Sequence record: NC_013585.1
Direction: 5' to 3' (one strand)
Length of the DNA stretch: 24,186 nt
The notes below the pieces were generated by a model. It was given only the letters and a program-made list of their open reading frames with translations. It was not told the DNA's origin and ran no database searches. The translations under genes and the position numbers were made by a program. Position 1 is the stretch's first letter; each line of letters starts with the position of its first letter. This document shows positions 2,483 through 23,469 of the stretch, in pieces.

Positions 2483-3164
2483 CGTATTATGGTTATCTAA
2501 AAAAATAGTTTCGGCATATCATAACATAGGCTTTGTATCGGCGGTAGTTTTCGGTAAGCAGGGTTCAGGGAAAACTACTTATGCCCTTAAAGTTGCTAGG
2601 GATGTATTTTGGAAACTAAACAATTTAGAAAATAAGGATGACGCATGGGATTACGTTAGAAATGCTTACTTCTTTGAATTACCTAATGCACTTGACAAAA
2701 TCCAAGACGCAATAGACAATGATTATAGGATTCCCTTAATCATATTTGATGATGCGGGTATTTGGATGAGTAAGTATGTATGGTATGAGGACTACATGAA
2801 AGTATTCTATAAGATCTATGCCCTCATAAGGACTAGGGTGTCAGCGGTTATATTTACAACCCCATCACCTGAAGACATCGCTTTTTATCTGAGGGAAAAA
2901 GGATGGTATCAGATACGGGTAACAATGGTGAATAGAAATAAGATGATAGCCAGAGCCACACTTTACGCTAAAGATTTCGGTAGAAACACAAGTGGTGAGA
3001 TCGTTACCCAGGTGAAGACAAAGGCCTTAGACTTTTTTAAGGTACAAATACCTGATAATATATATAAGGAATATATGCAAAGGAGGAAGGAAACGGAAAG
3101 AAAATTATTAGAAGAATTGAGAAAAACGCTATCAACCTTAAACGAAAAAAAGGCCGTTAATTAG
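2466..3164 (+). CDS. SSV1 B251-like P-loop ATPase (DnaA-like / putative packaging or replication ATPase)
   Basis: Walker A GKQGSGKT, Walker B LIIFDDAG; conserved position convergent with the integrase. Confidence 0.9.
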   Translation: MTSKSDVLWLSKKIVSAYHNIGFVSAVVFGKQGSGKTTYALKVARDVFWKLNNLENKDDAWDYVRNAYFFELPNALDKIQDAIDNDYRIPLIIFDDAGIWMSKYVWYEDYMKVFYKIYALIRTRVSAVIFTTPSPEDIAFYLREKGWYQIRVTMVNRNKMIARATLYAKDFGRNTSGEIVTQVKTKALDFFKVQIPDNIYKEYMQRRKETERKLLEELRKTLSTLNEKKAVN

Positions 3165-3179
3165 GGTAGATAACGGGGG

Positions 3180-4223
<1,044 letters not shown>

Positions 4224-4254
4224 AAGGAGTTTAAAAGCATTGGCAACCCGTTAG

Positions 4255-4298
4255 TTTTTGCCGTTAAAAAGCGTGAAATTGAAAGATGACGGCAAAAA
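4255..4298. repeat. Inverted repeat (10 bp perfect, 12 with a G-T pair) in the int / early-promoter intergenic region
   Basis: TTTTTGCCGT (4255-4264) is the reverse complement of ACGGCAAAAA (4289-4298). Confidence 0.75.
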
Positions 4299-4303
4299 AT
4301 ATG

Positions 4304-4373
4304 TAGTACAAAGTAAGTATACAGTAATGCTTAAATACTACAAAGTACAAAGATTATACTGAGAAAGATGGAA
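4304..4373 (+). promoter_or_regulatory. Early promoter copy A (70-bp direct repeat) with TACAAAG heptamers
   Basis: 66/70 identical to 10057-10126; CTTAAATA TATA-like box; TACAAAG at 4307, 4339 and 4346. Confidence 0.85.
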
Positions 4374-4544
4374 ACACACATCACCGTAAAAATGGATAAA
4401 AAGCTAAAGGATGTTTTTTCAGACCTATGCGAAATGGAAGGAGTGGATCTAAGCCACGGCATAAGAGAATTAATCGCTGAAGCTGTAGCTAGAGGCTACA
4501 TCGTGAAAGAAAGAAGAGAAAGAATGGAAAAGGTGAAGGCGTAA
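4368..4544 (+). CDS. 58-aa ribbon-helix-helix (CopG-like) regulator (not in ORF track)
   Basis: Hand-translated METHITVKMDKKLKDVFSDLCEMEGVDLSHGIRELIAEAVARGYIVKERRERMEKVKA: alternating beta-strand followed by two helices; first gene after the promoter. Confidence 0.8.
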   Translation: METHITVKMDKKLKDVFSDLCEMEGVDLSHGIRELIAEAVARGYIVKERRERMEKVKA

Positions 4545-4562
4545 AGCTGTGGGTGGTAACGC

Positions 4563-5078
4563 ATGAAAGCAATGAAATATAATTTCCAAGAAGTAGACGA
4601 AAGAAAACCAACACTAATAGTAAAATTGGCTCCAACGTCGGAAGATGGTAGTTACGGCGAAGCAGTATTGGAATTCAATAAACTATTGGAACCGGTAAAG
4701 GTGTCAGGCAAAACAAAGGACGGGAAAAACTTTGAGACGACTAGATGCGAAATGGTGGCGATACCGTTAGAAGGCGTATTCATCGATGTAATAAACAAAG
4801 AAGAAGTACCTAAGAAGGATCCCAAGACGGGCAGGGTTATAGGAAAAGACATGATACCTAAATCCTACACTGCCGACGAACTAAGCAAACTAATGGAAGA
4901 AAGAGGAAACGATGGAGTGATCATAAGGCTAAGTCAGGGTAGTTATGAATTTATAAGGAAGAACGTTAATGCGGGGAAGATACAATCCGGTGACATAATA
5001 AAAATAGAGTACACCATAGGGAATAGCGGAGGTGCTACAATAAAGAAGATATTTAAAGCAGAACGTGAAGAACAATAA
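4563..5078 (+). CDS. Hypothetical beta-rich protein, possible OB-fold ssDNA-binding protein
   Basis: 171 aa; GGTGGT RBS; beta-strand pattern ending GDIIKIEY; acidic tail EREEQ; sits upstream of two helicase-like genes. Function is inferred only. Confidence 0.65.
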   Translation: MKAMKYNFQEVDERKPTLIVKLAPTSEDGSYGEAVLEFNKLLEPVKVSGKTKDGKNFETTRCEMVAIPLEGVFIDVINKEEVPKKDPKTGRVIGKDMIPKSYTADELSKLMEERGNDGVIIRLSQGSYEFIRKNVNAGKIQSGDIIKIEYTIGNSGGATIKKIFKAEREEQ

Positions 5079-5100
5079 TTTTTTTTCGAGGAGATTTCTC

Positions 5101-5307
5101 ATGACTGTGATTTTATTACATAAAAAGGGGAAATACTCAACCACAACTAATTGCGAACCTGCACATGAAGTTTTGTTGGAAAACGGTCAAAGGATAAAAG
5201 CGGAAAAGGTTTGTTGGGAAGAAAATGGGAAAGTTACTGTTTTCGGAAATAAGGTTTACGTAATAAAGTTCGGCATTGCAACGGTGGTGGAGGAATATGA
5301 TGCTTAG
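5101..5307 (+). CDS. Hypothetical 68-aa protein
   Basis: GAGGAG RBS before ATG5101 (the track start at 5065 overlaps the upstream gene); overlaps the helicase start. Confidence 0.6.
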   Translation: MTVILLHKKGKYSTTTNCEPAHEVLLENGQRIKAEKVCWEENGKVTVFGNKVYVIKFGIATVVEEYDA

Positions 5308-6955
5308 AGATTATCAGGAGGAGATTGTAAAGAGAGCAGTTGAAGCATTGGATAACGGCCGTTCCGTTATCATAAACGCCCCAACCGGCACTGGAAAAAC
5401 TCTAATGGCTCTTGAGACTTTGAGGAGACTGGATAAGATAGGTTGGGTTTACGTTAGGACGATTTCAGAATACAGTTCGTGGGAAAGAGATGCAAGAAAA
5501 TTAGGTTTAACATTTAGCGGTTTAATGAGAAAAGGAGAATTTTGCAAAGCAATAAAGAGGCCTTATTATTACTATTGTACGAAATGTGATGAAGAAGTTG
5601 GTGAAGAGCACCTAAGGATACATAAAAGGTTTATAGAAAGGAGGTATAACAACCCTTTATGCTTTTCTTCTAAAACAGGATTATGTAGGTTTAGAGTTGA
5701 GAACCATGATGAGATTAAAGACACTGTAATAATGAAAATGGAAGAACTGTTAAGGAATGAGGGAATAAAAGGTACTGCTAACTGGTTTAGGGATAATAAA
5801 ATAGAAGGTGAAGATGTATGCGTTTATAAAACAATAGAAGGAGGTACGGACATCAGAATATACTCCTATATCTACTTCTTCTTAGGAATTAGGAAACCTG
5901 ATGAAGACATAGTAGTGTTTGATGAAGCCCATAACCTTGATGATTTTAATATCAATAACGTCACTATAACATTAAAGGAGATAATAAATCATTTCAAAAG
6001 GTTAAGAATTGAAGGTTTAAACGACGGCACATTTTTAGAGACCGTCGGGAATGATTTTAAGGAATTTATCCAAGATCCGGAAAGGGGATTTCCACATACA
6101 GAGTTCTTAGATGAAGATCTACAAAAAAAGTTTGGGACTGTAGCAAGGGCATGGGAAGAACAAGATAGATGGTATATAGAACGTGACTATAATGAGTGGT
6201 ACATTAAGGTAATGCCTGCAGACCCTGCAATATGGCTAAGTATTTTGAACGATTACCGCTTTATTCTCCTTTCTGGAACTATGCCGTCTCCTGAATACGT
6301 AAAAACCGTTTGGGGTCTTAATGATTTCGTTTATATTAATGCTTTATCGCTCTGGAGCAAAACGTCACTAAAAGGACATTTTGAGGGTGCTAAAATATTT
6401 GTGGATGACACTGTTTACTACATAAAGAATGAAAGGGCTAAATACAGAAAGCAAATAGCAGCCACCGTAAGACAATATGCGTCTAAAGAAGGAATAAATT
6501 TAGTAATAGTACCTAATTATGAGGAACTGGAAGCCTACAAGAATCTATTTTTCGGTGCTTTCTTTGAGGATATCAGACCGGACGTATTGGATCGCGTGAA
6601 GACTCTTCCTGATGGTTCTATAGTTTTTGCTGTAGCAGGAGGCAAGTTAAGTGAAGGTGTAGAGGTTACTGAAAACGGTAAAAGTAAAATAAAAACAGTA
6701 TTCGTAATAGGTCTACCTCTTCCCGAGTATAATAACCCCTACCTAGATAAAATGATTGAAACAGTTTCAAAAAGAGTATCAAAAGATCCTAACAACTTTA
6801 AGTGGCAAGTGCTTTACGAGAAAGCAGTCATTAAGATTAAACAGGCAATAGGTAGAGCCATTAGGGGCCCTCAAGATTCTGCAAACATCTACTTGATTGA
6901 CAAAAGGTTCGGGTACAAGAACGTAATGAGGTTAATGAATCTGGAGGTGGCCTAA
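5297..6955 (+). CDS. XPD/Rad3/DinG-family SF2 helicase with Fe-S-type cysteines
   Basis: Q-motif LRDYQ, APTGTGKT, DEAHNL, LLSGT, GGKLSEGVE, QAIGRAIR; GGTGGAGG RBS before ATG5297/5300. Confidence 0.9.
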   Translation: MMLRDYQEEIVKRAVEALDNGRSVIINAPTGTGKTLMALETLRRLDKIGWVYVRTISEYSSWERDARKLGLTFSGLMRKGEFCKAIKRPYYYYCTKCDEEVGEEHLRIHKRFIERRYNNPLCFSSKTGLCRFRVENHDEIKDTVIMKMEELLRNEGIKGTANWFRDNKIEGEDVCVYKTIEGGTDIRIYSYIYFFLGIRKPDEDIVVFDEAHNLDDFNINNVTITLKEIINHFKRLRIEGLNDGTFLETVGNDFKEFIQDPERGFPHTEFLDEDLQKKFGTVARAWEEQDRWYIERDYNEWYIKVMPADPAIWLSILNDYRFILLSGTMPSPEYVKTVWGLNDFVYINALSLWSKTSLKGHFEGAKIFVDDTVYYIKNERAKYRKQIAATVRQYASKEGINLVIVPNYEELEAYKNLFFGAFFEDIRPDVLDRVKTLPDGSIVFAVAGGKLSEGVEVTENGKSKIKTVFVIGLPLPEYNNPYLDKMIETVSKRVSKDPNNFKWQVLYEKAVIKIKQAIGRAIRGPQDSANIYLIDKRFGYKNVMRLMNLEVA

Positions 6956-8980
6956 ATGGATAAGGAAACACTTAAGAGGATAGTTGCTGAAAAACTGAAG
7001 AAGGATGGAGATGGGAAAAATAATTCAGTGCCACCTCAAAACTCAAATAACTTATTACGTAATGATAAAAATTCTCCGGAAGTAAACAAAGGGTATAACC
7101 AAAATGTACCATTTGCACCAGTGAATTTAAGCACTGGTGCAAGAGAAAAATTGACTGGTGCAAATGGTACAAATCACTCTATATCTTCCAAAACTTCCGG
7201 AGAATTTAGTTCATCAGATGAGGAAGAAATTGAAGAAGGTGTTGAAATTAAAGATAATATAATTATAATAAAAACGAAAGATAAACATAAATTCGAAATA
7301 TACTACGGTTTCGCTGGAACAATAGAGGACAATACTAGAATTATAGACCTTAAAGTTCCTCAACTTCCGCAATGGAATTTTGTAGCTAAGAAGAAGGATG
7401 AAACTTTAAGCATACTGATTACTATTGACTTTTATCAAGCCGAAGGAAAGACAATATACCATATTAGGAATAAGAAAGAGATAATTGGGAAACTTTACGC
7501 GTTCAGAGGTCAAAGAAATATCTCCAAGAAACTAATCAACGATGCTCTTGATTTATGGTTAGAACGCATAGAACCAGAGAAATATATACAATGGACAGAC
7601 GTACGTGAGGTGGTGAAAAAGTATGAAGAGTGGGAAGAGATAAATCAAGACCCGCTTAACTTTTTCCTAAGTAGGGCTTCGGAGGTTATAGGGAATGAGA
7701 AACTTAAGGCTGCGGTTTTGCTTAGTATAGTATCATCACAACTTAGGAAGCTCTTCGGGATATATCGTGTTCACTTAATTTTAACTGGTAGTTCCGGTGC
7801 CGGGAAGTCATCTACCATAAAATCAATCTTAAAGATGTTCTACGAGATGAGTGATGGGATCCAAGATTGGATAGTACTTAACATAACAAGGATGACAAAG
7901 GAAAGTTTAGGTTATCTTGACGTTGGTAGTCTTGACGATAAAGTGTTATTCATTGAACAACTTGACAATATAGAAGGAGTAGGATATCTAAGGGAAGCTA
8001 TGAGTGAAGGAAGAATAACTACGTTAATCCCGGTGAAGACGGAAACCGGGGATATAAAGACAGAACAAAAGATTATTCCGGGGCAGCCGGCATTTATTAC
8101 AACAAACGTTACTGCAAACGTTGACCACCAAATTCTAAATAGGTCGATACAGCTTTACTTAAGCCCGGCAGAAGATGAGAAGCTAAAAACGAAGATTATA
8201 GAGACGATCTTAGAGAGAGAACCGGAGGAGGAACTTCAAAAACTCAAATTAATTACCTATGTTTGGCTTAAGACAAGGCCTATTTCCCCAAAGATGACCA
8301 AAGAAGTGAAAGATGAATTGATAAGACTGCTTAGCAAGTTCATTAACTTTAAGAACATTTACAGGGCTACAGAAATCACTAGGAATTTAGTTAGAGCAGC
8401 AGCTTCACTTTTCGGCCATGAAGAGATTCAGAAAGACGACGTTAATTTCGTAATGAGTTACTTCAAGAAGGATATAATCCTCACCACATTAGAGCTCTCA
8501 GAGAGAGACCTTAATCTGTTGAAGTGGCTTAGAGACCACGGATTTATTCAAGGGGAGAAAGATGACGAAACTATTGATGTTGGTACCGCAGAAATAGCTC
8601 AATACTTTAAAATGGCAACTCAAGAGGTTAAGAAAATTTTGGATTCGCTTTATGATAAAGGTTTATTGTGGAAAGCATATGATGGTAAGCGTTTCAGTTG
8701 GGCGTTGTCACACTACGGGCTTAAAGTGTTGGATGAACTGGAGAAAGAGGTAGGAGAGAAAGAGGAGGAAATACAGGCAGATATCGAAGTTGATGATATG
8801 TTGTTGAATTATGTCCGTTCTAAGCTGTTAGGAAAAGATGAAGTTACGGAAGAGGAGCTTCAAAACATTTTGGAAAAAACAGTTCAGGCTACTGATACGC
8901 AATCACAACAAATGTGGATAGATCTGTTAGAGAAAATGAGCGTGATAAAGAAGAGTGATGGGAAATGGAAAGTGCTTTGA
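6956..8980 (+). CDS. MCM-like AAA+ ATPase / Rep-type helicase with disordered N-terminus and C-terminal winged helices
   Basis: GNEKLKAAVLLS, Walker A GSSGAGKS, Walker B-like LFIEQLD, REAMSEG, FITTN sensor 1, ILNRS arginine finger, wHTH TAEIAQYF...KKILDSLYDKGLL; GGAGGTGG RBS and TAAATG coupling. Confidence 0.75.
   Translation: MDKETLKRIVAEKLKKDGDGKNNSVPPQNSNNLLRNDKNSPEVNKGYNQNVPFAPVNLSTGAREKLTGANGTNHSISSKTSGEFSSSDEEEIEEGVEIKDNIIIIKTKDKHKFEIYYGFAGTIEDNTRIIDLKVPQLPQWNFVAKKKDETLSILITIDFYQAEGKTIYHIRNKKEIIGKLYAFRGQRNISKKLINDALDLWLERIEPEKYIQWTDVREVVKKYEEWEEINQDPLNFFLSRASEVIGNEKLKAAVLLSIVSSQLRKLFGIYRVHLILTGSSGAGKSSTIKSILKMFYEMSDGIQDWIVLNITRMTKESLGYLDVGSLDDKVLFIEQLDNIEGVGYLREAMSEGRITTLIPVKTETGDIKTEQKIIPGQPAFITTNVTANVDHQILNRSIQLYLSPAEDEKLKTKIIETILEREPEEELQKLKLITYVWLKTRPISPKMTKEVKDELIRLLSKFINFKNIYRATEITRNLVRAAASLFGHEEIQKDDVNFVMSYFKKDIILTTLELSERDLNLLKWLRDHGFIQGEKDDETIDVGTAEIAQYFKMATQEVKKILDSLYDKGLLWKAYDGKRFSWALSHYGLKVLDELEKEVGEKEEEIQADIEVDDMLLNYVRSKLLGKDEVTEEELQNILEKTVQATDTQSQQMWIDLLEKMSVIKKSDGKWKVL
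7069..7207. repeat. Nested inverted repeats centred at 7138 inside the MCM-like gene
   Basis: 15-bp perfect IR 7069-7083/7193-7207; 18-bp perfect IR 7105-7122/7154-7171; 11-bp hairpin 7113-7123/7132-7142. Confidence 0.9.
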
Positions 8981-9324
8981 GTTTATTTACATCAATAGAG
9001 ACTCACGGTATCGTTGTAAGGAAGCATATAAATTGGGATTATGTAGGTATTGCCATTACGACTATAGGTACTATAGTCGTCTTCAAAGATACAGACTGGT
9101 CATATTACGGTGTTTATTCACCGTTTAAGGGTAGGTATCATATTCATATGCCTTTTACTGACATTGTAATATTTGATGATAAAAGTAAGGATGTGCTAAA
9201 CGAAGTATGGGGATGTCTTCATTTTGCAGAATGTTATATCGAAAAAGGGGTAGTGTATAGTATAAACAAGTTTAGAATGAGGAGTTTTATTCCGTTTGGA
9301 GTTCATACAACAACCAAACTTTAA
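8965..9324 (+). CDS. Hypothetical 119-aa protein
   Basis: Overlaps the end of the AAA+ gene; aromatic and beta-rich; no recognised family. Confidence 0.6.
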   Translation: MESALSLFTSIETHGIVVRKHINWDYVGIAITTIGTIVVFKDTDWSYYGVYSPFKGRYHIHMPFTDIVIFDDKSKDVLNEVWGCLHFAECYIEKGVVYSINKFRMRSFIPFGVHTTTKL

Positions 9325-9477
9325 TATTTTTATATCATAAGATAGGTACTACGTATTATGTTTTTTATAGTAATACCATGTCTAAAGATGAAAAATACAT
9401 AATCTTACTAACATTAGGGTAATACTACCATCTACATTAGTTATAGTTTAAAATAAAGAAGTGTATTAAAAAAATAG

Positions 9478-9786
9478 GTGGTTGCATTTAATTGGGTTAA
9501 AGAGAACCTAGTATTAGGTAGTATAGTGAGGTTAAAAAAACTTATTGAAGATGAGGATATAGAAATAGCAAAAAAGGAGGCTAGACGTTATAAACTGAAG
9601 CTCTGTGATTGGTCTAGAAATGAGTGGTGGTTTCATCAATGGCATAGTGTTTTCGAAATTGTAGAATTTGATTTACGGCGAGATCTTATAGATTCGGCGT
9701 ATGAGATGTTAGAGCAGGCTGAGTTTCAACTTTCAATAACTGAGCCAAGTTTTTCTAAGGTATCTGTTAAACAGAGTAAAGCCTGA
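9478..9786 (+). CDS. Hypothetical 102-aa protein
   Basis: Open frame after an AT-rich spacer; start uncertain; last 61 nt overlap the convergent wHTH gene. Confidence 0.5.
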   Translation: MVAFNWVKENLVLGSIVRLKKLIEDEDIEIAKKEARRYKLKLCDWSRNEWWFHQWHSVFEIVEFDLRRDLIDSAYEMLEQAEFQLSITEPSFSKVSVKQSKA

Positions 9787-10056: not shown

Positions 10057-10126
10057 TAGTACAAAGTTTGTACACAGTAATGCTTAAATACTACAAAGTA
10101 CAAACATTATACTGAGAAAGATGGAA
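10057..10126 (+). promoter_or_regulatory. Early (T6-like) promoter copy B (70-bp direct repeat)
   Basis: 66/70 identical to 4304-4373; contains the palindrome GTACAAA-G-TTTGTAC and tandem TACAAAG-TACAAAC after the TATA box. Confidence 0.85.
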
Positions 10127-10424: not shown

Positions 10425-10604
10425 ATGAGAGTTATTACATTTAAAGCAGAAGAAGACCTATTAGAACTATTAGATAGATATGCAGCAAAACATGGGATAT
10501 ACAGAAGCGAAGCTATACGAAAAGCAATAGAAAAAATGGTAGAGGACGAAGTTAAAAAAGAAACTGTACCAACGGCAAAAATCGAAAAGGGGCAAAGGTT
10601 ATGA
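10425..10604 (+). CDS. 59-aa RHH/CopG protein, SSV1 C80-like (not in ORF track)
   Basis: Hand-translated [59 protein letters not shown]; GGGTGG RBS. Confidence 0.88.
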
Positions 10605-10753
10605 AAAGCAGAAAGGAAAGAATATATTGGTGCAAACTATGCGGGTTTACTGCGACTTCGATAGAAGAACTAGAATTCCATACCGAAATGGCCCATGAGA
10701 GTGATGACTCAATTCTTGATGACGATTGGGTTAGCGAAAGGGATGTGTGGTAA
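10601..10753 (+). CDS. 50-aa C2H2 zinc-finger protein with acidic tail (not in ORF track)
   Basis: Hand-translated [50 protein letters not shown]; ATGA overlap with the upstream stop. Confidence 0.8.
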
Positions 10754-23443: not shown

Positions 23444-23469
23444 CTTACACACTTTATAAAGTGTGTAAG
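23444..23469. promoter_or_regulatory. vp1 promoter: TTTATAAA box at the centre of a 26-bp perfect palindrome
   Basis: CTTACACACTTTA|TAAAGTGTGTAAG; TGAC initiator-like site at 23481. Confidence 0.8.

Follow-up and report, generated by a model that had tools for sequence, protein, structure and literature searches.

Replication origins are already known in which repeats and an AT-rich tract lie inside an initiator gene, as in the ori of phage lambda, or in which short units form a palindromic array, as in SV40. We analysed a candidate of this general kind in ASV1, a fusellovirus of thermoacidophilic archaea (NC_013585.1, ~24 kb; the window is the whole stretch of 24,186 nucleotides (nt), to which positions refer unless another genome is named). 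It is a palindrome of about 140 bp made of short units of 7 bp, which lies mid-operon, 110-250 nt inside the coding region of the gene C674. Its distinctive traits are the 7-bp units, a two-fold symmetry in which an outer pair keeps a fixed distance of 21 nt, the position in linker-coding DNA, the extreme diversity of the units and the lack of co-variation with the protein.

In lambda, the repeats cluster in the part of gene O that encodes the inter-domain linker, an AT-rich tract adjoins them, and they differ among lambdoid phages. The ASV1 repeats also lie in the linker-coding DNA of a predicted initiator, next to an AT-rich tract, and their unit sequence varies among relatives. However, lambda has four direct 19-bp repeats with an internal dyad, whereas ASV1 has 7-bp units in a symmetric 2+1+2 array with an outer pair. 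The N-terminal domain of O changes with the repeats among lambdoid phages, whereas no folded domain co-varies with them in the C674 family. Finally, the lambda ori is essential and proven, and the ASV1 element is neither.

Polyoma- and papillomavirus core origins (the GAGGC pentamers of SV40 site II; the E1 site) share with the array four short units in two inverted pairs, an AT-rich flank and auxiliary symmetric sites. Their units are thought to load two opposed helicase assemblies, and their initiator joins an N-terminal DNA-binding part to a P-loop helicase. These origins are non-coding and their units nearly invariant within a family, whereas the ASV1 array is intragenic and its units diverse. 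Unlike their initiators, C674 cannot be identified as a superfamily 3 (SF3) helicase, and no known origin-binding fold resembles its N-terminal domain. The iteron origins of plasmids such as pPS10, R6K and RK2 resemble the array in their clustered, lineage-specific repeats of variable copy number, spaced by multiples of the helical turn, with a rep gene and an AT-rich region as neighbours. Yet iterons are usually direct repeats of 17-22 bp that co-evolve with a winged-helix Rep, whereas the ASV1 units are of 7 bp, also inverted, intragenic and without detectable winged-helix co-variation. Ribbon-helix-helix (RHH) heptad arrays, such as those of the omega protein of pSM19035, have contiguous 7-bp units in direct and inverted orientation, but lie at promoters and serve transcription and partition, whereas the ASV1 array is intragenic and has no partition ATPase with it.

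In the Sulfolobales, the origin of plasmid pRN1 is a stem-loop downstream of orf904. A putative stem-loop origin has also been described at the open reading frame (ORF) A49 of SSV10 (PMC6080066). Both are like our element in that a proposed or mapped plasmid or virus origin lies at a stem-loop beside or in a gene. However, the pRN1 replicase (primase-polymerase (prim-pol)/SF3) belongs to another family than C674, no array of repeated units has been described for pRN1 or SSV10, and the SSV10 proposal concerns another region, in a virus without the helicase gene block. No fusellovirus origin had been functionally characterised as of 2018 (PMC6080066), and a 2022 review (PMC9608457) mentions only a hypothesised origin region in SSV1. 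We found no account of the palindromic element in the literature searched, which did not include the first description of ASV1 or the pSSVi paper.

A symmetric array of 7-bp units within C674

The array consists of two forward units, one middle unit and two reverse units, each of 7 bp and with a period of 9 bp, enclosed by an outer pair of arms (table 1). The inner arms are perfectly complementary over 18 nt (TGTACCATTTGCACCAGT at 7105-7122, ACTGGTGCAAATGGTACA at 7154-7171) and 96% complementary when extended to 24 nt (7105-7128/7148-7171); the outer arms reach 86% when extended to 22 nt (7062-7083/7193-7214). Both pairs share the centre 7138 and are separated by 21 nt on each side. An alternative perfect hairpin of 11 bp (7113-7123 with 7132-7142) makes use of the middle unit. 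The sequence-only reading from which we started had given both nested repeats, the centre, the gaps and this hairpin, with correct coordinates throughout, and had described the encoded peptide as of low complexity. The structural prediction agrees: the element covers codons 38-84, and AlphaFold2 gives a predicted local distance difference test (pLDDT) score below 30 to most of residues 14-92, so the whole element falls within a predicted disordered linker.

Such a structure is hardly expected by chance. Apart from the outer and inner pairs, the whole ASV1 genome has no perfect inverted repeat that reaches 15 nt (gap of at most 150 nt), and 300 dinucleotide-preserving shuffles gave a mean of 0.003 for at least 15 nt and 0 for at least 18 nt. 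The single-stranded DNA of 7060-7216 has a predicted fold of -37.1 kcal/mol, against -11.0 +/- 2.8 in shuffles (z = -9.5). Half of the TGGTRCA sites of the genome (5 of 10) lie within the 67 nt of the array, and the 10-mer core of the outer arms, TCTCCGGAAG, occurs nowhere else in ASV1. The outer arms also contain a TCCGGA dyad, which resembles the core of the origin recognition box (ORB) of archaeal Orc1/Cdc6 origins only loosely.

The layout is kept in relatives while the unit sequence changes

The same layout was found at the same place in nearly every C674 homologue, in viruses, metagenomes, proviruses and the plasmid pSSVi, with at least 18 different unit sequences. Among viruses, the homologues of SSV12, SSV14 and M.04.0.13.SSV (Kamchatka) and of SSV7 (Iceland) have 62-73% identity with C674 and carry the layout at the matching place, with units TGTGTCG/CGACACA or TGTTACG/CGTAACA; the arms of SSV7 are perfect over 19 nt. 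Further types (GTGCCA, TGCATCA, TGTGGCA, TGTGCCA and TGTGACA) come from 13 metagenome loci and from four contigs obtained through protein look-ups. The layout extends to more distant relatives with 33-45% identity and a helix-turn-helix (HTH) of the TrmB type (the loci L128 and L152-L155, and pSSVi), in which the loops are tight (4-6 nt). Among these, an SSV from Yellowstone carries TCCCCTA and TAGGGGA, three copies of each, and the types GCTCAGT, ATTGCGG, TGTGGTA and GCGTCGC belong to metagenomic elements and a provirus of S. islandicus L.S.2.15. In pSSVi (L156, NC_013777.1) the layout lies at 512-570, as TCCCCGG and CCGGGGA in three copies each, in the 5' part of a 735-residue ORF annotated as a MarR family regulator. 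The protein search also found homologues in Sulfurisphaera, Acidianus and S. islandicus genomes, and the N-terminal peptides of 45 more homologues obey the same rules (e.g. NASNAS...DANDAN and NVVNVV...TTNTTN). The palindromic module is a hallmark of the PF27228 replicase-like proteins of Sulfolobales viruses, proviruses and pSSVi.

Beyond the units themselves, most relatives retain the outer arms, with compensatory variants such as TTCTGCAGAAGT/ACTTCTGCAGAA in L142 and TTCTACGGG/CCCGTAGAA in L149, and most have the middle unit, whose orientation differs in L138, L147 and L148. Outer and inner arms stand 21/21 nt apart in 12 of 16 modules, including L149 where the central loop has 92 nt; this distance corresponds to about two helical turns. 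The 21-nt stretches of the left and right sides are not complementary to each other, except in L141. In L132-L137, L142 and L148 the palindrome is flanked by extra copies of the unit, all in one orientation and variable in number. These copies, which are found in two reading frames, sit in tandem units of 33 nt, and contigs that are otherwise near-identical (L132-L137, L144) differ in the number of such units.

The units are largely confined to this locus: it holds all copies in SSV14 (5/5), M.04.0.37 (7/7) and L142 (11/11), and 26 of the 27 in L148. We looked for a second cluster elsewhere in the examined genomes, as a regulon would show, and found none. This argues for a single cis site and against a regulator with several operators.

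Two relatives deserve a separate description. In SSV7 (L005/L151, 6493-8544) the homologue is split into B471 and B192, the module is intact, and the outer arms have decayed (two mismatches in 12). The locus L148 (ENA ERZ27246788, contig k141_38308, 10001-12781) encodes a 926-residue homologue with three tandem modules and 26 copies of TGTGCCA. Its host element is not a fusellovirus and carries genes of ParA-like, DNA methylase, ATV_ORF273-like and pRN-like type. Mobile elements of different kinds thus exchange the gene block.

A generic inverted-repeat search missed the modules of the distant homologues because their spacers are not complementary, and a unit-based script recovered them. A scan of viral contigs for exact 14-mers of the outer arm gave only single matches expected by chance, and a pattern of both arms matched ASV1 alone. 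A protein pattern had no match in contigs of one genome per species, though the protein search did find genomic homologues.

Evidence that the DNA is under selection

We tested covariation on an alignment of the arms alone (14 distinct versions, 16 arm positions). Standard base pairs are formed at 96% of the positions, a level reached by none of 500 shuffles, although this percentage is partly circular, since the script that picked the arms demanded near-complementarity. When the partner was slid by 1-3 columns, 24-39% were paired. The independent evidence is that such arms are found at the matching place in nearly every homologue. All 16 positions have changed on both sides among the 14 versions, and G-U combinations make up only two of 224 cells.

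The encoded peptide has not been conserved in the process. It changes non-conservatively between relatives, e.g. from VPFAPV to VSFVSP and from TGANGT to SDTNDT, and the left and right arms code for unrelated peptides, which change in concert. The 18-mer ACTGGTGCATCGTAWTAC of L133 yields TLVHRN where it lies upstream of the palindrome and TGASYY where it lies downstream, i.e. it is read in two frames. In L141 (LAFI01000038.1, 74-227) the complement of the right 21-nt spacer has taken the place of the left one. The module there is perfectly palindromic over its full length, with arms of about 50 nt, and the replacement introduces an in-frame TAA into the C674 homologue. Since the symmetry persists while the peptide changes non-conservatively, these comparisons strongly support the view that selection acts on the DNA rather than on the protein at this element. 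The sequence-only reading had suggested as much from ASV1, and had proposed covariation in homologues as a check. The homologues bear it out: the symmetry is kept with the arm sequences replaced, in step on both sides.

An AT-rich tract next to the array

The AT-richest windows of the ASV1 genome begin 35-38 nt past the outer right arm, within the coding sequence (40 nt with 90% AT from 7245; 60 nt with 87% AT from 7242). We assessed this tract, a candidate DNA-unwinding element, by its base composition. In SSV14, SSV7, L146, L133 and L148 the AT-richest 60-nt window of the available sequence is also found 20-40 nt downstream of the module, and in L142, L138 and L149 the window next to the module ranks in the top 1%. 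In this ranking SSV14 and SSV7 are complete genomes and the L-numbered loci partial contigs.

The C674 protein and its links to replication

C674 follows the Rad3/XPD-like helicase gene C559, whose stop codon directly abuts the start codon of C674, and both genes form one block. The winged helix-turn-helix (wHTH) domains predicted at its C-terminal end are backed by matches to wHTH proteins in a PDB profile search, in which transcription regulators and TubR, a centromere-binding protein, were the nearest relatives of solved structure. Pfam gives a weak match to the MCM P-loop, and precomputed Pfam matches place the family in PF27228 (MTBMA_p00010_2nd). Beyond the P-loop and the wHTH, searches with C674 in Pfam, NCBIfam, PHROGs and PDB sequences gave no functional family, and neither sequence searches nor a fold search with the N-terminal domain model matched a characterised initiator.

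Makarova et al. 2014 (PMC4158269) related C674 to the helicase part of prim-pol proteins of the Mpal_2033 type and suggested that it takes part in initiating viral DNA replication. The integrative plasmid pSSVi has only 5.7 kb, and its episomes replicate upon SSV2 infection (PMC8371274). The 735-residue homologue of C674 is its only large gene besides the integrase, and the only 2+2 unit module of the plasmid lies in the 5' part of this gene. Other small integrated elements have a similar make-up, with an integrase, a few small ORFs and a protein of the C674 family.

Compared with the features of iteron-type origins, ASV1 and its relatives have clustered short repeats (five units in ASV1, 5-26 in relatives, nearly all at one locus) and an adjoining region that is AT-rich in composition. 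Co-variation of the unit sequence with a DNA-binding domain of the initiator was not seen in domain-by-domain identity matrices. The GC skew along ASV1 shows no switch at the element; gene orientation dominates it.

We also considered and rejected other known kinds of element. A rolling-circle double-strand origin does not fit, as neither C674 nor its neighbours match a Rep/HUH family and the loop sequence is not conserved across the family. A CRISPR array, or a mini-CRISPR, would have direct repeats of 24-37 nt with unique spacers, whereas the units here are of 7 bp, direct and inverted, with a 9-bp period and no spacers. No Rfam family reached the gathering score at the element, and the region 6900-7400 gave only sub-threshold generic hairpin matches.

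A candidate origin and the competing explanations

The element is best described as a cis-acting DNA site in which a two-fold symmetric array of units and a more conserved outer inverted pair at 21 nt stand next to the most AT-rich DNA of the genome. We propose that it is the site where an initiator binds and is loaded, i.e. a candidate replication origin inside the gene of its own initiator, a reading based on sequence comparison to which we assign a probability of about 0.5. The symmetry, its conservation through changes on both sides, the single locus, the spacing, the AT-rich neighbour and the association with the C674 family, seen in all elements examined, are direct observations; from them we infer that a protein would bind the array, which protein this would be and that replication would start there. 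The array would be the assembly site of the replication machinery encoded around it, namely the ATPase/winged-helix protein C674, perhaps joined by the Rad3-like helicase. The protein would bind double-stranded DNA at the units, in two mirror-image sets, melting would spread into the adjoining AT-rich tract, and replication would start there. This would be the origin of an accessory replicon in ASV1-like fuselloviruses and in integrative plasmids like pSSVi, and the differing unit sequences would give every replicon a private origin. The element could sit within C674 because the disordered linker that it encodes would tolerate almost any peptide.

Several observations weigh against this proposal. 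No folded domain of C674 tracks the unit type in the domain identity matrices. For example, the proteins of L147 (unit TGCATCA) and L138 (unit GTGCCA) are 92% identical and their units differ. They are identical in residues 221-408 and 502-674, which hold the ATPase and winged-helix domains, and differ in 91-220 and 409-501, where a few deciding residues may set the unit specificity. Likewise, the ASV1 protein is closer to that of SSV14, with different units, than to those of L132 or L127, with the same units, and the identity of the beta domain in same-unit pairs (72-82%) equals that of other pairs. A conserved DNA-binding domain does not easily account for a variety of at least 18 unit sequences in proteins so closely related. 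The model of the N-terminal domain (pLDDT 85) has no significant structural match in the PDB, including known origin-binding domains. The AT-rich tract codes for a conserved peptide rich in I, K and N, so its composition may be a by-product of coding.

SSV9 and a set of short SSVs add to these difficulties. The homologue of SSV9 (SSVK1) is shorter and lacks both linker and module, and a passaged SSV9 variant lacking bases 2823-9693 still forms zones of clearance (PMC6452263). This deletion removes the whole gene block, including the helicase and the C674 homologue (PMC6452263). Since SSV9 is viable without the block, an ASV1-type replicon would be accessory and not essential to fuselloviruses in general. 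In addition, seven short SSVs from Kamchatka (11.3-11.9 kb) keep one or two modules without the body of C674. They retain a 3' remnant of the helicase gene and no other gene of the block; those with two modules have a TGTGTCG module followed in tandem by a TGTTACG module. This fits a cis site that has outlived its protein and is perhaps served in trans by a co-resident SSV, and it equally fits an inert remnant of one ancestral deletion. In L004/L007/L006/L145 (MK054217, MK054216, MK054212), sampled in 2000 and 2010, the modules lie at locus positions ~540-1080. The likeness to lambda ori and gene O raised by the sequence-only reading holds for the anatomy: the repeats occupy linker-coding DNA of a predicted initiator gene, an AT-rich tract adjoins them, and pSSVi has a homologue of this protein. 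The lack of domain co-variation, the viability of SSV9 and the short SSVs weigh against the simplest version of the idea.

As a separate observation, the C674 family is strongly mosaic in the alignment of ASV1 residues 91-674. L147 and L138 differ by about 25% in residues 91-220, and the mosaic pattern of identity in this pair points to frequent recombination at domain boundaries.

The lack of matching protein specificity would be explained if the palindrome acted by its structure, as a cruciform or as single-strand hairpins after unwinding, and were recognised through DNA self-pairing. It would still have a role in replication or recombination, by another mechanism: priming on two strands as at the ssi palindrome of IncQ plasmids, nicking, junction resolution or recombination. 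We consider this possible, though unlikely. The great variety of units without protein co-variation, the strong single-strand fold (z = -9.5) and the loops of 4-6 nt in distant members fit it, as does the fact that left and right remain complementary where the units of one arm differ (TGTACCA/TGCACCA against TGGTGCA/TGGTACA in ASV1). The L141 module, with its 50-nt perfect arms at the cost of an in-frame stop, is the expected product of template switching on a hairpin. However, positive supercoiling, which fusellovirus DNA can have, works against the extrusion of a cruciform. The spacers within the arms are often non-complementary, as are the 21-nt stretches outside L141, so stems would be short (7 bp) and weak at 75-80 C. 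A hairpin also needs no direct-repeat units, no outside copies of one orientation and no symmetric 21/21 spacing. The details of the arms bear on this choice. The two units of one arm are near-identical direct repeats, an identity that pairing does not require, and in four of 14 versions the 2-nt spacers do not pair (AA in both arms), as is also the case throughout the units of L128 and L155. What is conserved is the units and not a continuous stem, as expected of binding sites. Direct-repeat identity, non-complementary spacers, one-orientation extra copies and 21/21 spacing favour units bound on duplex DNA, while mirror symmetry despite unlike units (ASV1, P0042), the huge unit variety, the palindromisation of L141 and the loops of 4-6 nt favour pairing. 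We rank duplex binding first and a structure-based role second, and both are replication or recombination readings.

The remaining explanations do without initiation at this site. Arrays of 7-bp direct and inverted units are typical of RHH operators and centromeres (omega protein of pSM19035), so the element might be an operator or centromere-like site bound by the C674 winged-helix domains or by a small viral RHH/HTH protein, for autoregulation of the operon, copy-number control or partition. The nearest solved wHTH relatives are indeed transcription regulators and TubR, RHH/CopG-like genes occur in these elements, and a single locus suits a centromere. Yet we regard this as rather improbable: the site lies 110-250 nt inside a coding region, mid-operon and not at a promoter, ASV1 and pSSVi have no partition ATPase, L147 and L138 have identical winged-helix domains and different units, and the adjoining AT-richest tract would be left unexplained. 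It is less probable again that the palindrome has no function and is a tandem repeat in tolerant linker DNA, kept by slippage, hairpin-templated repair and recombination (concerted evolution). The region is rich in indels with variable copy numbers, recombination has made the family strongly mosaic, the case of L141 demonstrates templated homogenisation, and SSV9 lives without the module. But long palindromes are normally unstable, and this layout is nevertheless kept down to 33% protein identity and across kinds of element, with conserved spacing and outer arm sequences, and persists in short SSVs sampled in 2000 and 2010. If it worked as RNA, the element would be a long mRNA hairpin between the helicase and the body of C674 that controls translation, stability or processing. 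It is transcribed within the operon, compensatory changes would preserve an RNA stem equally well, and the alternative 11-bp hairpin could act as a switch. However, Rfam offers no family here, its generic hairpin matches all staying below threshold, and just 2/224 cells are G-U although RNA tolerates G-U. Two-fold symmetry, 21/21 spacing, direct-repeat units and one-orientation copies are not features of RNA stems; the start codon is far from the site; and the short SSVs keep the module with the downstream gene gone, all of which makes this account highly improbable.

The most far-fetched idea, to which we give the least credence, concerns how the units would be recognised. The disordered N-terminal repeat peptide, encoded by the repeats themselves, or an RNA or DNA copy acting as guide, might recognise them, in place of a conserved folded domain or simple self-pairing of the DNA. 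The peptide is by construction the sole thing that changes in step with the repeats, and could therefore share in recognising them. If so, the origin and its specificity determinant would occupy the same nucleotides and co-evolve instantly, which would account for the presence of at least 18 private unit sequences in a set of proteins with 65-92% identity.

Implications

Fuselloviruses are model viruses of thermoacidophilic archaea, and returning to the origin proposal, the element is a precise candidate of about 240 bp. Nature offers variants of it: at least 18 unit types, tandem double modules, a version with an in-gene stop codon and module-bearing genomes without the protein. Minimal origins for Sulfolobus/Saccharolobus vectors could be derived from it. 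It also illustrates clearly how sequence that codes for a disordered part of a protein can conceal a cis-acting DNA signal, and the extreme diversity of repeats without visible protein co-variation raises the question of how they get recognised.

Features of the window and minor observations

Table 1. Positions in the ASV1 window of the parts of the array, the AT-rich tract and the two genes of the block, with the domains predicted for C674.
Feature	Position	Strand	Description
Outer left arm	7069..7083 (extends 7062-7083)		AAATTCTCCGGAAGT; 15 nt perfect
Inner left arm	7105..7128		forward units TGTACCA 7105-7111 and TGCACCA 7114-7120 with TT between, then GTGAATTT
Middle fifth unit	7132..7142		reverse orientation, TGGTGCA at 7135-7141, in the loop
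Inner right arm	7148..7171		AAATTGAC, then reverse units TGGTGCA 7156-7162 and TGGTACA 7165-7171 with AA between
Outer right arm	7193..7207 (extends 7193-7214)		ACTTCCGGAGAATTT; 15 nt perfect
AT-rich tract, candidate DNA-unwinding element	7242..7305		encodes conserved peptide EIKDNIIIIKTKDKHKFEIYY
C559, Rad3/XPD-like helicase gene	5276..6955	+	Pfam Helicase_C_2 5e-22, plus ResIII and DEAD_2; annotation
ASV1_C674, host gene of the element	6956..8980	+	GenBank annotation
C674 predicted domains, first half			residues: N-terminal helix 3-15; disordered linker 14-92; beta domain 95-170; helical 173-260 (AlphaFold2)
C674 predicted domains, second half			residues: P-loop ATPase ~270-400; lid 408-512; winged-helix 516-596 and 614-673 (AlphaFold2)

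The only other close pair of units in ASV1 is formed by TGTACCA (forward, 10565-10571) and TGGTGCA (reverse, 10628-10634), with 56 nt between them. They lie at the 3' end of A59 (CopG-like) and in the intergenic stretch ahead of A109, and their proximity may be due to chance. The copy of GTACAAA at 7167, which had been read as an echo of a promoter heptamer, is a weak case: it simply belongs to the right arm, the genome has 10 copies where about five are expected, and a connection of the element with a promoter heptamer finds no support. Other copies cluster in two intergenic promoter-like regions, at 4306 and 4345 and at 10059, 10067 (minus strand) and 10098, which precede the first gene of the helicase operon (4368) and C96 (10121), respectively.

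Further repeats lie elsewhere in the window. A perfect 12-nt hairpin with a 2-nt loop (CTTACACACTTT/AAAGTGTGTAAG, 23444-23469) is found 20 nt upstream of the VP1-like capsid gene (23490), and a 12-nt inverted repeat (11948/12084) brackets the start of C62. The only Rfam match in the ASV1 genome is a tRNA-like sequence (Rfam tRNA, 34.2 bits) at 3932-4003 (+), within the SSV-type integrase gene D347 (3180-4223, -). It corresponds to the expected attP, and integration splits D347.

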